Shown here piece after piece: positions 26,361-30,631 of a stretch of DNA of 32,000 nucleotides (position 1 is its first letter; every line of letters begins with the position of its first letter). This stretch comes from Wallemia ichthyophaga EXF-994. Its lineage: Eukaryota > Fungi > Basidiomycota. The stretch is from assembly GCF_000400465.1 (NCBI RefSeq), contig NW_008806282.1:90001-122000 (forward strand), given 5' to 3'. Position numbers and translations under genes: made by a program. The notes below the pieces were generated by a model. That model was given only the letters and a program-made list of their open reading frames with translations. It was not told the DNA's origin and searched no databases.

Positions 26361-27764
26361 TTATTCTAAAACAACATGCTTGATCGTGAATTTGTGAATA
26401 ACAGCTATAATGGGATCACTGAAAGACTTGGATGATTTAACAACAAGACTTTCTAATTTAGGAAGTGATTTGAGCAGCAGTTCGCCGTCGAGTATTGCAG
26501 GCTGGTAAGTGATGCTCCTCTCCATATCGTCGTATAGCGATGAAGTGTTATCGCGTGGTCTGTTGTCGACCGTGTTAGTCTGCTCGTAAGTGCATCTAGT
26601 TAGAGTGAGGTGGGTAACATTCCTCAAACAGCCTTCGTTACACTGCAGTGGAAACCCAAATGTGCAATTCTCGATTGAGATTTGGTGCAACTCCTGTGAT
26701 CGGAGCATACCCAAAAACCACGAAACGTTGCAAACACTATCGAGAAATACGACCCGCAGTTTGCGCACATTCAGCTGATTTGCGAATGCCCGGTTATCTC
26801 GAAACCACTTGAGGGTCGCTCTGTCCATAGCGAAGCTGCTGTTTTTCATCTTGATCGTATACAGCTCGGGACACTGGATGAGACAGCTAAATGTGACGGC
26901 TGACCTGTTGCGGGATTCTACAACTGCTGTGCGTGTCGGCTGCAAGTACGGCGCCCCTGGTATCGTTGTATGCTCCATCGCGACGTCTTTACCCTCCAGC
27001 TGCAGGTTGTGGGAGAGGGTGGACATGATGGTATCTGCGTCGCCTTTCAGCCTCCAATTGAGGAGGTGTAGATCGCTTGGGAAGGTAGTGAGGTGGTACA
27101 CTTCCGCCTCATTCAATCCGATAAGCTGCGAGTAATTGCGCATCCTCAGTTTCTTACATGTCAAACCAAATAGAGACTCAGTGAGGGTGAGTATGAAACC
27201 CTTTTTTTCGCTGTTGAATGGGCCTCCGTAGTAATTCACCTCAATCAGCTCAAATGGACGGTTTGGCGAGACGTCGAGCAGCTGAAAGAAGAATCCCTTC
27301 AAGAACATCCTATTGTACGCGCGTATACACAGCTTCACACTTCTTATATACCCGCACCGCTCAATGTGGCTTTGGAATCTGCCGCGTAGATTCGACATAT
27401 TCGCGTCGAAGCTCACTTTGCCTACGTTTTCATCTGTGGATATGAACGTGTTGACGTATACGTAATTTGTATTTATCGCGCGATACCATGCTCTGTTCAC
27501 CAGCTTGCCGTTGTGGGCTGCACTGGGGCCGTTATTCTCGTGGCAGAGATATCCGAAGACAAGTTCGATGAGCTCGTTGGGGAGTCTTTTTAGAGGATCC
27601 TTGTGCCATTTGTGCGCTTTTTTTGTGGATAGGCTGGCCATACCTTTCTGATATACACGAGTGAATAAGTGATTCACGCAAACAGCACAGGTACACACTT
27701 TTTCTACATCTTTATCAGACTGCCCTGATTTGCAGGGTTTACGTGGTTTGGACCGCGTGTCCAT
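26361..27764 (-). CDS. F-box protein with a probable LRR/RNI-like C-terminal region
   Basis: DPLKRLPNELIELVFGYL is an F-box motif, followed by LxxLxL-type repeats. Start taken at MDTRSK (27764). Possible stop-free 51-nt intron 27648-27698. Confidence 0.7.
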   Translation of the reverse strand: MDTRSKPRKPCKSGQSDKDVEKVCTCAVCVNHLFTRVYQKGMASLSTKKAHKWHKDPLKRLPNELIELVFGYLCHENNGPSAAHNGKLVNRAWYRAINTNYVYVNTFISTDENVGKVSFDANMSNLRGRFQSHIERCGYIRSVKLCIRAYNRMFLKGFFFQLLDVSPNRPFELIEVNYYGGPFNSEKKGFILTLTESLFGLTCKKLRMRNYSQLIGLNEAEVYHLTTFPSDLHLLNWRLKGDADTIMSTLSHNLQLEGKDVAMEHTTIPGAPYLQPTRTAVVESRNRSAVTFSCLIQCPELYTIKMKNSSFAMDRATLKWFRDNRAFANQLNVRKLRVVFLDSVCNVSWFLGMLRSQELHQISIENCTFGFPLQCNEGCLRNVTHLTLTRCTYEQTNTVDNRPRDNTSSLYDDMERSITYQPAILDGELLLKSLPKLESLVVKSSKSFSDPIIAVIHKFTIKHVVLE

Positions 27765-27844
27765 GTCTGATGATGGCCGAGTCGGTTGAAGATTGATAAC
27801 AAGATAAGATTCATAAACATTCATAAAAGTCAGAGGTACATAAG

Positions 27845-30631
27845 CTAATGCCATCCACCACCTGGATAGCCTGGGTAACCGCCTGGGTATCCTTGCGGTG
27901 GTCTTGGTGGTGGTTGATAAGGGTGCACTGAATGCTCCGGATGCCCTTGATAACCACCATAACCAGGATATACACCATACCTACCATGGGAAGGCATTTC
28001 CATTGGAGGCGGCATCGGTGGTGGCATTGCTGACGGCATAGGTGGTCCTTGCATAGGCATTGGCGGTGGATTATACATTCCAGGTTTCGGTGGCTGGCCA
28101 TATGGCACATGCCCACCCGGTCCACCACCAGGCATACCCATTCCCATACCAGGCATCCCCATTGGCGGTGGGCTTGAGTATGCACCCGGTCCCGGCATAT
28201 ATCCTGGGTCGGGCATAGGTGGGGGCTCGGCGTATGGCATGTAGGGCGTGTGGCGCCCAGGTGGGGTGGGTGGTTTCGTGACGTGTCGTCCATGATACGC
28301 AGCTGGTGGGTATGGAGAGTGTGAGTGTGAGTGTGAGTGCTGCAATGATGGTGTTGATGTTGATGGTCTCGAATGCGTCGGTGGTGGTGGCGCTGGCTGT
28401 TTGCTGTCATTATCCTTCTTGCCCCCACCGCTGTCATTTTTCATTGCTCCTATACCCAAATTAGCTATCGAACTAAGCAATGAGGAATTCTTGCCACCAC
28501 CGCCATCGCCCTGTCCACTGCCACCTTGATTCCCACCGCCACCACGACCCTCAGCATCTCCACCGCCGGCATTTGCGGGCGAGGCATTTGTGTTGATCAG
28601 CCCCCATAATCCTCCGCTCGTAAACTCATTAACTCCCTCCTGACTATTGCCGTATGGATCATTAACCGTTTGGACATGTGTATGAACCTTGTTGGATGAG
28701 TCCATGCAGCTCTGTTTGTTCAAAGCACGCTCAATTTGGTCTATCTTGGGCCCTTGTGCCTTGACCCACTTCTTCATGAACTCGCCCATCTTCGTCTGTA
28801 TCTTGCTATCCTCATTAGCGAAGTATGGGTGATGTATTACTTCCAGAATCTCGTCGATTATACTGTCAGGATTTTCCTGGTTGCCCCAAGCTTCAACAAT
28901 TCTCTTGGTCGTTTGGCTAACTGCAATTTGAGCCAAGTTCCCGCAAGGGTTGTTCAGAAGGTGATCGAAATGGTCCTTGGCGAGACCAGTGTGCGTTGGA
29001 TCTGAACAGTTTGGATCAGTGTATACCTCCAATTGGTTTTTTGTTGCTAAAAGCTCTTCTGAACCCTTACCAATCGAGCTCTTGGCCTGCTTGATAAGAG
29101 GATCAATGAATGGCTCGAGAGTGGAGTAAATAAAGACGGCGATCGAGTTGGATATCTTTTCTACTAACGCGCTCAAACCTGGAATTTTATCTATTGTCAC
29201 TTCGATTGTCTTTGACACTCTGTCTCGGAAACACAGTATCTGCCATAGAACAGCGTATTGTTCCTGGGGGCTCATTTGATCAGGGGATCTCGACGTCGAG
29301 CGGAGGTTGCTGACGTCCTCGAATTCTCTGTTGAGTGAGCGTTGTCCACCGCCACTGTTGCTATCTGTGGTACTCCTAGTGAGTGGAACCTTAGAGCTAA
29401 CTCCGTCTAATTGGAAGATGAGGTCCCTGAGTGTGTCGATGATTGAATTTCCCCCACTTCCTGGCTGACCGCGTGACTTTGTAGTAGAACGATTCACTTC
29501 ATTATGAAGATCTGAGACGGATGCTGAGGTAAGCTTGTCACCAGCTTCACCTAATACACTGGCTGGTGGGTGTCTGAGTTGGGCTGGCAAGCTATTAGAA
29601 GCCACCCACCCATGAAATCCATACCACCAAATGATCCTGTTACTATTGGGGGTACGTTTTCGCCGCTAGGAGCACGTATTCTTACATTTTCACCAACATG
29701 TGGAAACACATCGGTAAGCCCAAGTTTGTAAAGGTAGATTTCAGCAAAATTGGAGTGCGCAGAAAAGTCAGCTAATGTATGGCAGCTTGTACCGAGCCAA
29801 CGAAACGCTTCGAACTCATCTTTGCTGTTTTTAGAGTTCTTATACCTTCTTCCATACTCGATGCAGAGACGTAAGCGTTCACGAACGAGGGCAGTGGAAG
29901 TATCACAAACGCTCTCATTAGCGATGTAGTTCTTCATGCCAGTGCGCGGATCAATTTCCAATTCAATTTGTTGAACAGGTCCTCTGAGACGTTCATCGTA
30001 CTGTTTCGCATCATCGGGGTAGCCTGTGTGTGGGTTAGATGGACGCAAGTAACATGACCACTACCAGCCTTTTGGATTATCAATGTGTTCTGTGGGGAGA
30101 TAAACGCCTAAGCGCTCATCGGTCACTTCAAACTCTTCCGTCGCGTAACCGAAAGCCAAGAAGGACATGACCATGACGATGTTGAGGATTGTCTGCTTAT
30201 TTATCTTGGACAAAGCAGCTGTGTCATTCGCTTGTGAATAATCGCGGAGAAAATCGTAGAAGTAGATGCGCTTGACATCAAGGCTCGTGAATTTGGTACG
30301 CGTCACAGCGGATAGAATACCGCTACCAGACTTCTTATAAAGATCTGCGAGTGCATCCATAATATCACCATGCCGGAATTTCTTTCTGAATTACCTGAGC
30401 AACAGTTTGACTTATCGGAGTAGGTACTTACCCCTGCTTAACCTGAGCATCGGTTTGACGTATCGGGGTAGATACTTACCTCTATACTAGCGTATGAAGG
30501 ACTGATAGCTGTGAGATTTCCGAGATTTCCGAGTCTGATGACTAGTCCACGTACATATTACCAGCACCAAATGCACTGGCTGTAGTTAACAACACGGCCA
30601 CGATCAAGAGCAGAATAACGCCATTTCTCAT
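27845..30631 (-). CDS. het-C: Het-C domain protein with signal peptide and long P/G/Y/M-rich tail, about 849 aa, 6 exons including a 2-nt exon
   Basis: AFGAGNIPSY..IEGKKFRHGDI, RIYFYDFLRDYSQA.D, EHIDNPKGY, GMKNYIANE, HTLADFSAHSNFAE, DPTHTGLAKDHF. Introns 30502-30554, 30434-30479, 30386-30431, 30024-30068 (GC-AG) and 29563-29609 give 2550 nt in frame. Confidence 0.9.
30386..30479 (-). repeat. Direct repeat of two 46-nt introns (38/46 identical) separated by GG
   Basis: GTAAGTATCTACCCCGATACGTCAAACCGATGCTCAGGTTAAGCAG | GG | GTAAGTACCTACTCCGATAAGTCAAACTGTTGCTCAGGTAATTCAG on the minus strand. Confidence 0.93.

Follow-up and report, generated by a model that had tools for sequence, protein, structure and literature searches.

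Paralogous twin introns around a predicted two-nucleotide exon in the het-C homologue of Wallemia ichthyophaga

The het-C homologue and its twin introns

The window analysed here, a stretch of 32,000 nucleotides from the salt-loving fungus Wallemia ichthyophaga EXF-994, carries a het-C homologue on its minus strand (27845..30631). Its full-length match to Pfam Het-C (PF07217) is significant, at E=1.4e-190 and 635 bits, and pairs residues 6-570 with positions 3-559 of the 561 in the profile. The spliced model comprises 6 exons with an uninterrupted frame of 849 aa and a TAG stop at 27847-27845, and is 95% identical to the public W. ichthyophaga models, from which it differs only at introns that those models misplace. 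The feature under study is located in the 5' part of this gene, whose elements are as follows.

30555..30631, minus strand: exon 1, signal-peptide-like N-terminus through FGAGN + AT
30502..30554, minus strand: intron 1, GTACGT...TATCAG, 53 nt, phase 2
30480..30501, minus strand: exon 2, 22 nt, T CCT TCA TAC GCT AGT ATA GAG = (I)PSYASIE
30479-30434, minus strand: twin intron A, 46 nt, GTAAGT...GCAG, phase 0 after a Glu codon, sequence GTAAGTATCTACCCCGATACGTCAAACCGATGCTCAGGTTAAGCAG
30433-30432, minus strand: GG, proposed 2-nt exon, first two bases of the Gly codon GG|A
30431-30386, minus strand: twin intron B, 46 nt, GTAAGT...TTCAG, phase 2 inside the Gly codon, sequence GTAAGTACCTACTCCGATAAGTCAAACTGTTGCTCAGGTAATTCAG
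30069..30385, minus strand: exon 4, A AAG AAA TTC CGG CAT GGT GAT ... AAA G
30024..30068, minus strand: GC-AG intron, G|GCTGGT...CACACAG|GC, phase 1
29563..29609, minus strand: intron, GTGGGT...CACCAG, 47 nt, phase 1, with CTCAG 12 nt from its 3' end
27848..29562, minus strand: last exon, including a Pro/Gly/Met-rich low-complexity C-terminal tail

The introns of W. ichthyophaga het-C other than the twin measure 45-53 nt, and much of the surrounding structure is shared with the sister lineage L009. The exon 1 junction AT|T (Ile) has the same position and phase there, exon 4 retains 85% amino acid identity, and exon 2 differs by four synonymous changes and one non-synonymous change, which suggests that it is under purifying selection in the frame used. 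Intron 1, with CTCAC 10 nt before its 3' end and a 9-nt tandem (GAGATTTCC x2.3), is spliced otherwise in several public models, yielding an extra LGNLGNLTAIS. Removal of the GC-AG intron is required for NPKG-YPDD, the reading in all relatives; its L009 counterpart begins with GT (G|GTTGGT), and the two are homologous by local alignment, with a score reached by 0/2000 shuffles.

Coordinates and identity of the twin agree with the earlier note on this DNA, which had described two 46-nt GT-AG introns matching at 38/46 positions and separated by GG only, and a repeat search returned the region as a direct repeat of 48 nt with a period of 48. When one copy was compared with the 32-kb window (blastn-short), its partner was recovered at E=3.8e-6 and everything else at no better than about 0.2, a similarity well beyond chance. 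The twins and GG are present in seven independent W. ichthyophaga assemblies (the window plus L002, L003 and L010-L013), with a single SNP among them at 30439 in intron A (A in the window, G in L002/L003), so an assembly artefact, which the earlier note had named as a possible refutation, is ruled out. An opposite-strand feature was rejected as well: none of the plus-strand ORFs of 30 aa or longer overlaps the twins, and no Rfam family lies at the site. The comparison supports the interpretation of introns A and B as paralogous copies of one another.

Splicing of the twin and status of the two-nucleotide exon

With both introns removed and GG kept, the product reads ...PSYASIE-G-KKFRHGDI within the open 849-aa frame, and removal of all 94 nt, with loss of GG, yields E-KEIPAW-stop, a stop after 6 codons; both outcomes had been predicted from the letters alone. 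The site, GCAG|GG|GTAAGT, places a canonical acceptor and donor around a candidate micro-exon of <=3 nt whose GG is needed for frame. When all GT/GC-AG combinations were enumerated, three other in-frame isoforms emerged besides the 2-nt exon, two of them used by public annotations, and the description of the 2-nt exon as "obligatory" therefore has to be dropped. One of the three, an 11-nt exon (GTTAAGCAGGG; intron A shortened to 37 nt and ending at CTCAG) that adds VKQ/VEQ, had been anticipated as adding VKQ; the other two had been overlooked, namely a 5-nt exon CAGGG (intron A of 43 nt, ending at TAAG) that adds Q, and a single 98-nt intron from donor 30479 to AAAG 30382 that deletes G-K. The junctions expected in mRNA are as follows.

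2-nt exon: GCTAGTATAGAG-GG-AAAGAAATTCCGG (ATAGAG-GG-AAAGAAATT)
5-nt exon: GCTAGTATAGAG-CAGGG-AAAGAAATT
11-nt exon: GCTAGTATAGAG-GTTAAGCAGGG-AAAGAAATT
94 nt removed, frameshift: GCTAGTATAGAG-AAAGAAATTCCGG
98-nt intron: GCTAGTATAGAG-AAATTCCGGCATGG (ATAGAG-AAATTCC)

Conservation of the protein discriminates among these products. The spacing from FGAG to RHG is 13 residues in 126 of the 136 sequences that have the motif, and the 10 exceptions are all Wallemia gene models that mis-splice this very region; W. mellicola and L009 read E-G-K-A-F-R-H-G from uninterrupted DNA. The length of E-G-K-x-F-R-H-G-D, which the earlier note had given as typical of Het-C, is thus borne out in every homologue outside the mis-modelled Wallemia entries, and among the enumerated models only the 2-nt exon restores it. 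From this conservation we infer that GG is used as an exon of two nucleotides.

A single 98-nt intron (...SIE-KFRHGD), its internal sites being leftovers of an intronic duplication, would be in frame, with a canonical donor and one splicing event. The spacing would then fall to 11 residues, and the spliceosome would have to pass over a better CAG 4 nt upstream, whose use frameshifts. Furthermore, GG + AAAG align with the Gly-Lys codons of the relatives (GGA AAA / GGC AAA), as expected only if these bases still code, and we regard this structure as highly improbable.

Both twins contain a pentamer close to the 3' end that bears on the choice of acceptor.

30443..30447, minus strand: CTCAG in intron A, 10 nt upstream of the 3' end; likely branch site, and acceptor of the public 11-nt-exon models
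30395..30399, minus strand: CTCAG in intron B, 10 nt upstream of the 3' end; likely branch site

An identical TGCTCAGGT element occurs in introns A and B at equal distance from the end, and a CT[AC]A[CG]-type motif is found 9-12 nt before the 3' splice site in ten other het-C introns from three Wallemia lineages. The argument covers these approximately ten introns of het-C only, as a de novo intron catalogue of the window contained too many false positives. CTCAG is therefore likely to be a branch site and not an acceptor, with its A as the predicted branch point in either intron. In intron B an acceptor at this point would create a stop (GGG TAA), so that this intron must skip it; every in-frame solution with the GTAAGT donor needs an acceptor beyond the CTCAG of intron B, either CAG (30386), as in the three solutions retaining G-K, or AAAG (30382), four bases on.

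The public GenBank models (21 strains and the reference EXF-994) choose a 5- or 11-nt exon and never GG alone. On this alternative the main mRNA would contain either micro-exon as a lineage-specific insertion of one or three residues. Both versions are in frame, such exons are less extreme than one of 2 nt, and the CTCAG of intron A is the first AG after a possible branch-like GUCAA 12 nt upstream. Nonetheless, we consider it unlikely, given that the insertion would strike a motif whose length does not vary among 126 homologues, both sister lineages included, and that intron B shares the CTCAG that it has to skip. The acceptor of the 5-nt exon is GAG, the weakest type, in L002/L003, and with the 11-nt exon the SNP at 30439 would mean K->E. 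Neither can the models themselves carry much weight, since predictors cannot emit 2-nt exons and the same models are demonstrably wrong at two other het-C introns. The GC-AG intron at NPKG|Y is skipped or mistranslated, and this error together with that at intron 1 marks the models as ab initio artefacts rather than transcript-verified structures; in total, all public het-C models, those of EXF-994 and of the 21 population genomes, contain errors at as many as three introns.

We favor, at a probability of roughly 0.65, a reading in which paralogous 46-nt U2-type introns (GTAAGT ... CTCAG-N9 ... CAG) interrupt GAG|GG|A AAG and are both removed, leaving GG exonic. Introns A and B would each be recognized and removed separately by intron definition, probably sequentially rather than simultaneously, because the acceptor of A overlaps the U1 binding site of the donor of B and joint assembly is unlikely. 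The product GAG-GG-AAAG would retain GG as a constitutive 2-nt exon and encode ...FGAGNIPSYASIE-G-KKFRHGD.... Expected by-products are transcripts in which donor A is joined to acceptor B, with 94 nt out and a frame shifted into a stop, and transcripts in which CTCAG or TAAG of intron A generates the 11- or 5-nt exon, adding residues to a motif of invariant length. Exons of two nucleotides are extremely rare. A constitutive exon of a single nucleotide has been demonstrated in Arabidopsis APC11 (PMC4674806), which makes one of two nucleotides feasible. Full-length and N-terminal protein searches of the protein collection yielded no cDNA-derived W. ichthyophaga het-C sequence, and neither the gapped junction pattern nor the 5' 27 nt of the intron, with variable positions made degenerate, matched JGI metagenome contigs; RNA-seq exists for W. 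ichthyophaga (PMC3849046). Standard aligners do not place exons as short as 2 nt.

Polarity, age and origin of the twin

The locus was compared with that of W. mellicola and of the sister lineage L009 (recovered from SRR25399871), for which the tree (W. mellicola,(W. ichthyophaga, L009)) was obtained with support of 100/99. Neither relative has an intron at the twin site, and both share a phase-1 intron, HG^D, at a position that is uninterrupted in W. ichthyophaga.

30368..30369, minus strand: site of the ancestral phase-1 intron (Gly codon of HGD), contiguous CAT GGT GAT in W. ichthyophaga

This position lies 17 nt downstream of intron B, and the introns at E^G (19 nt upstream of HG^D) and at GG^A (17 nt upstream) occur in W. 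ichthyophaga only. The comparison shows a genus ancestor with no intron at the twin site and a phase-1 intron 17 nt downstream, and a W. ichthyophaga lineage in which the HG^D intron was lost precisely and the twin appeared. The ancient origin that conservation in distant relatives would have implied is not seen, and the twin is regarded as a lineage-specific gain because the two closest relatives have no intron there; a search of the protein collection for a relative closer than L009 returned none.

Of the earlier proposal that the twin is a candidate recent intron gain, the gain stands and the recency does not. The copies differ at 8/46 positions (17%; JC 0.20) and are fixed in all seven assemblies, while W. 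ichthyophaga strains differ by only 0.2-0.34%, which argues against a recent event; fourfold sites compared with L009 differ at 45/82 (JC about 1.0). Intron sliding via shifted splice sites was ruled out, as the intervening 17 nt encode the same residues in all lineages. Local alignment of the twins to the ancestral HG^D intron scored no better than shuffles (p about 0.5-0.7), in a test of low power given that one of two orthologous intron pairs compared with L009 (intron 1) also failed and only the GC-AG intron at NPKG passed.

The origin of new spliceosomal introns is largely unresolved, and cases in which parent and daughter introns are both visible are rare. Here, the present sequence exceeds any functional one-intron ancestor by exactly 46 nt, that is, one intron length. 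Single tandem duplications of 46 or 48 nt were worked through and none yields X-I-GG-I-Y from a functional ancestor. For a gain of the Rogers type, the period (48 nt) does not equal the intron (46 nt), and an ancestor with one unit would lack 2 nt and be read out of frame; the objection that a plain 48-nt duplication breaks the frame was accordingly correct, and tandem genomic duplication fits only with an added 2-nt deletion. The arrangement calls for one of two histories: insertion of a precise 46-nt copy of the intron at a distance of 2 nt, or duplication with later deletion of 2 nt.

In the favored reading, one twin would have been copied from the other exactly over the length of the intron and inserted at a distance of 2 nt, and a fitting process would be reverse splicing into a nearby AG|G followed by reverse transcription and recombination. 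The other route concerns the origin only. An intron with two adjacent exon bases would have been duplicated in tandem over 48 nt (X-I-GG-I-GG-Y or X-GG-I-GG-I-Y), splicing at the outer sites would have been tolerated, and two nucleotides would later have been deleted, with no intron-specific transposition involved. The 48-nt period points in this direction, as do the two bases before both repeat units, which match too (AG/AG). Such duplications and small deletions are common mutations, an intermediate spliced at the outer sites stays in frame as derived from the sequence, and among mechanisms of intron gain only tandem genomic duplication is described as having been demonstrated by experiment in vivo (PMC8469720). 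Set against this, three events (gain, duplication and an exact 2-nt deletion) are needed instead of two for copy insertion, and under intron-defined splicing of short introns the intermediate would mostly lose both copies and shift the frame. The copy boundaries also match GT...AG exactly, and no intermediate was found in the two relatives examined. We hold duplication with subsequent deletion to be possible, though short of an even chance. The earlier suggestion that an intron copy was inserted 2 nt from its template is retained in part: the paralogy holds, the copying would be the process behind it, and duplication plus deletion is kept as its alternative.

A more specific scenario, to which we give little credence, is transposition in cis. 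After excision, the HGD-Gly intron would have been inserted again into its own transcript, 17-19 nt further upstream, and fixed via cDNA, with the relocated intron then copied again 2 nt away, creating the first known paralogous pair around a constitutive 2-nt exon in a fungus. Fixation through cDNA would also explain the precise loss of the HG^D intron.

The label "introner-like", which the earlier note had attached to the twin, found no backing. It would make the two introns members of a dispersed mobile family inserted twice side by side, and the copies are indeed 83% identical and seamless in a formerly continuous exon, as reported for fungal introner-like elements. However, the 32-kb window contains no third copy (blastn-short, nhmmer) and no other intron-sized close tandem pair, and two independent insertions 2 nt apart are very improbable. 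At 46 nt the twins are shorter than the species mean of 61 bp, whereas introner-like elements exceed regular introns, and no stable fold was detected (z = -2.04 and -0.55 for the copies taken singly and -0.98 for the whole block of 94 nt). Repeats make up 1.67% of the compact genome (PMC3849046, also the source of the mean intron length). Membership in such a family is very unlikely.

Relation to known systems and implications

The closest likeness is to the 1-nt exon of Arabidopsis APC11 (PMC4674806), with which the het-C site shares one or two coding bases between canonical splice sites, a frame-keeping role and omission by automatic annotation; the het-C case differs in being fungal, in having paralogous flanking introns and in that its exon is predicted. 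Fungal stwintrons, described by Flipphi, Fekete and co-workers (PMC5639578, PMC7138796, PMC8469720), likewise comprise two U2 introns in one place, removed by consecutive reactions, with a duplicated donor element and seamless lineage-specific integration. In stwintrons, however, the external intron has one of its splice elements split by the internal one, and the two are not separated by any exon base, whereas A and B are two bases apart and each have a complete GTAAGT donor, a branch-like motif and a CAG acceptor of their own, and removing either creates no new splice element. Zero-nucleotide ratchet points of Drosophila (bioRxiv 10.1101/006163, PMC8605326) also present an acceptor followed almost at once by a donor, as in CAG|GG|GTAAGT. 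They leave no base in the mRNA and act in very long introns; in het-C, GG separates AG from GT, two nucleotides would be kept and the introns are 46 nt long.

Near intron pairs (Lehmann et al. 2010, PMC2891723) are defined by positions <32 nt apart, the ancient one being absent where the novel one is present, and this is what was found for the het-C twin and HG^D, the ancient intron being gone where novel positions 17-19 nt away exist. The twin departs from that pattern in that sliding is excluded and that two novel positions 2 nt apart coexist in one gene, a situation which Lehmann et al. considered very unlikely. Introner-like elements of Dothideomycetes (PMC3609843, PMC4457414) share with the twin near-identical introns placed seamlessly at new positions, but occur as copies in many unrelated genes, with greater length and a stable fold, compared with two adjacent copies in 32 kb here.

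The case limits the mechanisms by which the introns could have arisen, since a single tandem duplication and boundary sliding are excluded: both copies are recognizable, the insertion is base-exact, two relatives preserve the ancestral state free of the intron, and the older intron at a distance of 17 nt has gone from the lineage that gained the twin. It also serves as a warning for annotation, in that pipelines disallowing GC-AG introns and micro-exons misread this gene. Should cDNA confirm GG, only one constitutive exon named in the literature examined would be smaller, and the short-intron spliceosomes of fungi would be able to handle two introns with sterically overlapping splice sites.

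The twin introns and their gene

On the minus strand, joined exons 30631-30555, 30501-30480, GG, 30385-30069, 30023-29610 and 29562-27848 encode an uninterrupted 849-aa protein with a Pfam Het-C match over full length (E=1.4e-190). The top database match of this protein is the W. ichthyophaga het-C homologue (95% identity), every difference falling at mis-modelled introns, and the second-best is from W. mellicola (60%). The introns that matter here are as follows.

Introns and proposed microexon in the 5' part of het-C (window coordinates)
30502-30554, minus strand: intron 1, in which the 9-nt GAGATTTCC is repeated in tandem (x2.3) and two AGs lie close together (CACAG, TATCAG)
30479-30434, minus strand: intron A, 46 nt, GTAAGTATCTACCCCGATACGTCAAACCGATGCTCAGGTTAAGCAG
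30433-30432, minus strand: GG between introns A and B
30431-30386, minus strand: intron B, 46 nt, GTAAGTACCTACTCCGATAAGTCAAACTGTTGCTCAGGTAATTCAG
30024-30068, minus strand: GC-AG intron G^GCTGGT...CACACAG^GC, at NPKG^Y

As the earlier note had it, introns A and B are paralogous, with 38 of 46 positions identical and a mutual match at E=3.8e-6; in a repeat search they came up as a direct repeat of 48 nt and period 48. When each copy was searched against the window, its sole real match was the other copy, the rest being chance 8-12-mers, and an nhmmer profile built from both found no third copy there below E=0.5. Except for a coding low-complexity repeat (28493-28567), the 32-kb window held no other close tandem repeat of intron size. 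On the plus strand, the twin introns are not overlapped by any ORF of 30 aa or longer; a search of Rfam gave no family at their site. An assembly artefact was ruled out, as introns and GG are identical in two GenBank W. ichthyophaga assemblies (L002, L003) and four Logan assemblies from separate sequencing runs (L010-L013); the sole variation in the twin region across these and the window is a SNP (A or G) at 30439, in intron A. Overall, the window is 99.7-99.8% identical to the two GenBank assemblies across 7.2 kb.

The C-terminal third of Het-C (27848-28600, minus strand) is Gly-rich and then passes into a Pro/Met/Gly/Tyr-rich low-complexity tail outside the Pfam domain, which has diverged strongly from W. 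mellicola (40% identity). Directly downstream lies a 493-codon open frame (26502-27980, minus strand, frame 2), which in the GenBank loci is a 450-aa neighbour gene lacking a Pfam match. The order Tle1-like lipase domain protein, dienelactone hydrolase, het-C is kept in three Wallemia lineages (L001, L002, L009), the two upstream genes lying outside the window or at its edge; many W. mellicola GenBank models fuse hydrolase and Het-C (about 1020-1050 aa; e.g. P0002, 1036 aa).

Splicing of the twin site

Enumeration of all GT/GC...AG combinations, with one or two introns, joining exon 2 in frame to FRHGDIMDAL gave four in-frame solutions that use strong GTAAGT donors, so the 2-nt exon cannot be called obligatory, as it had been.

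In-frame solutions, with product and FGAG...RHG spacing in residues
Removal of both 46-nt introns with GG retained: SIE-G-KKF, 13
Intron A ending at TAAG, 5-nt exon CAGGG: SIE-Q-G-KKF, 14
Intron A ending at CTCAG, 11-nt exon GTTAAGCAGGG: SIE-VKQ-G-KKF, 16
Single intron of 98 nt, with AAAG (30382) as acceptor: SIE-KF, 11

Two earlier predictions held: removing exactly 94 nt as one intron shifts the frame to a stop after six codons, and the internal CTCAG acceptor offers an in-frame alternative adding VKQ. Because the changes in the 22-nt exon 2 relative to L009, the locus of a closer relative (Logan assembly of SRR25399871), are mostly synonymous (four, with one non-synonymous), the N-terminal exons are under selection in the SIE frame and must join the rest in frame.

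Of 136 retrieved sequences with the motif, 126 show a spacing of 13 residues from FGAG to RHG, the ten exceptions all being Wallemia gene models (eight from W. ichthyophaga, at 14, 16 or 27, and two from W. mellicola, at 22). Uninterrupted DNA encodes E-G-K-A-F-R-H-G in both W. mellicola and L009, and the GG and following AAAG of the window align with their Gly and Lys codons. Only the GG-keeping pattern gives 13 residues, and on this comparison the 2-nt exon would be needed for a conserved Het-C protein, as first proposed. The main rival is that the annotated 5- or 11-nt exon is used instead; both are in frame, but they stretch the spacing to 14 and 16, and the public W. ichthyophaga models containing them are ab initio artefacts, wrong at two further het-C introns. 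At NPKG^Y the W. ichthyophaga intron is GC-AG (the homology to its L009 counterpart, which has a GT donor, is detectable), so that every public model avoids it, either skipping 26 conserved residues (ATEEFEVTDERLGVYLPTEHIDNPKG) or replacing VYLPTEHIDNPKG with NTLIIQKAGS; at intron 1, several use different splice sites, which puts LGNLGNLTAIS inside the conserved FGAGNIPS motif. The protein collection held no cDNA-derived W. ichthyophaga fragment across the twin site, and a gapped splice-junction pattern had no match in JGI contigs; W. ichthyophaga RNA-seq exists (PMC3849046). We consider the 2-nt exon the most likely functional isoform, with a probability of about 0.65-0.7.

None of the canonical solutions lets intron B use its own CTCAG, which as an acceptor gives GGG TAA. 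A 9-nt element (TGCTCAGGT) is identical in both introns at equal distance from the intron end, and CT[AC]A[CG] lies 9-12 nt before the acceptor in about ten other het-C introns of three Wallemia lineages, the set on which the motif argument is based; an intron catalogue made de novo from the window had too much noise for proper statistics. Given this placement and the skipping by intron B, CTCAG in the twin introns is better read as a predicted branch site than as an acceptor.

Lineage and age of the twin introns

W. mellicola (L001: ...GTAGAAGGAAAAGCTTTTAGACATG^gtaagc...(46 nt)...aaag^GTGATATC) lacks an intron at E^G and instead has one, in phase 1, inside the Gly codon of HGD (HG^D); the arrangement is the same in L009 (...GTCGAAGGCAAAGCATTTAGACATG^gtgagt...(89 nt)...cttcag^GTGATATT), whose exon 3 is 85% identical to that of W. 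ichthyophaga at the protein level. The Het-C core gave the maximum-likelihood tree (W. mellicola,(W. ichthyophaga, L009)), with support 100/99. From this tree and the HG^D intron common to W. mellicola and L009, HG^D is ancestral for the genus and the twin introns are derived, in agreement with the intron gain proposed earlier. W. ichthyophaga has precisely lost HG^D (30372-30364 reads CAT GGT GAT without a break) and has all remaining het-C intron positions in common with L009.

Among five outgroups, Puccinia coronata (L008, 430-527) carries an unrelated 98-nt phase-0 intron exactly at the E^ boundary of intron A (LE^DK), absent from Cryptococcus, Meredithblackwellia, Tilletia and Grifola; along this stretch, nearly every basidiomycete lineage has its introns at different positions. 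As both Wallemia sister lineages are intron-free at E^, the Puccinia intron probably arose in parallel, at an AG^G site that favours gain. Intron turnover in het-C is high within Wallemia: additional introns occur in W. mellicola around VYF^GNWLRDYSQ (L001 3000-3500), and NPKG^Y and FM^A, which W. ichthyophaga and L009 share, are missing there, the W. mellicola 73-562 block forming one contiguous tblastn HSP. The Het-C branch is about three times longer in W. ichthyophaga than in L009 (0.14 vs 0.042 changes per site), which suggests faster protein evolution in this obligate halophile.

The earlier description of the gain as recent does not fit the divergences. The copies differ at 8/46 sites (JC 0.20), whereas fourfold-degenerate sites differ at 45/82 between W. 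ichthyophaga and L009 (JC about 1.0; NG86 dS is saturated) and W. ichthyophaga strains by only 0.2-0.34%. The copying event is much younger than the L009 split and far older than the present population; the twin introns are lineage-specific, not recent.

Origin and comparison with known phenomena

With GG and AAAG both inherited from the ancestral exon, the gene of today is the ancestral GAG GGA AAG into which two 46-nt GT...AG sequences have been inserted exactly, with 2 nt between them. Relative to a one-intron ancestor that could have functioned (X-I-GG-Y or X-GG-I-Y), today's X-I-GG-I-Y is longer by one intron length, 46 nt, whereas the repeat has a period of 48 nt. No one-step tandem duplication, whether of 46 or of 48 nt, yields this structure: with a 48-nt unit the ancestor would have lacked 2 nt and been out of frame. 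The earlier note was right to exclude a plain 48-nt tandem duplication. A seamless, intron-specific copy may have landed 2 nt away from the intron it was copied from, as would be expected from reverse splicing or intron transposition, both discussed for fungal introns (PMC8469720, PMC3443670, PMC10996645). Alternatively, a 48-nt tandem duplication, tolerated by splicing at the outer sites, may have been followed by a 2-nt deletion. We give seamless copying somewhat more weight, since it takes fewer events and the copy boundaries fall on splice sites. That HG^D, 17 nt from the twin site, was precisely lost in this very lineage suggests that one cDNA-mediated relocation took place; similarity of the twins to the HG^D introns of W. 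mellicola and L009 was not detectable, in a test that had little power. Sliding of the intron boundaries can be excluded, as the 17 bases in between code for identical residues in all three lineages.

The label introner-like, applied earlier, was set aside against the defining features in PMC3609843: the copy number is two, at least locally, the length is below the W. ichthyophaga mean and the folds are unremarkable (z = -2.0, -0.55, -0.98). A stwintron is ruled out, each intron being complete with two exon bases left between them; a recursive-splicing ratchet point is similar, but here 2 nt are retained. The intron positions of W. ichthyophaga and its relatives fit a near intron pair (Lehmann et al., PMC2891723), although in W. 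ichthyophaga het-C two positions 2 nt apart coexist, and those authors regarded such coexistence in one gene as very unlikely. The nearest precedent for the GG exon is the constitutive 1-nt exon of Arabidopsis APC11 (PMC4674806), before which, according to that paper, the smallest constitutive exon known was 6 nt.
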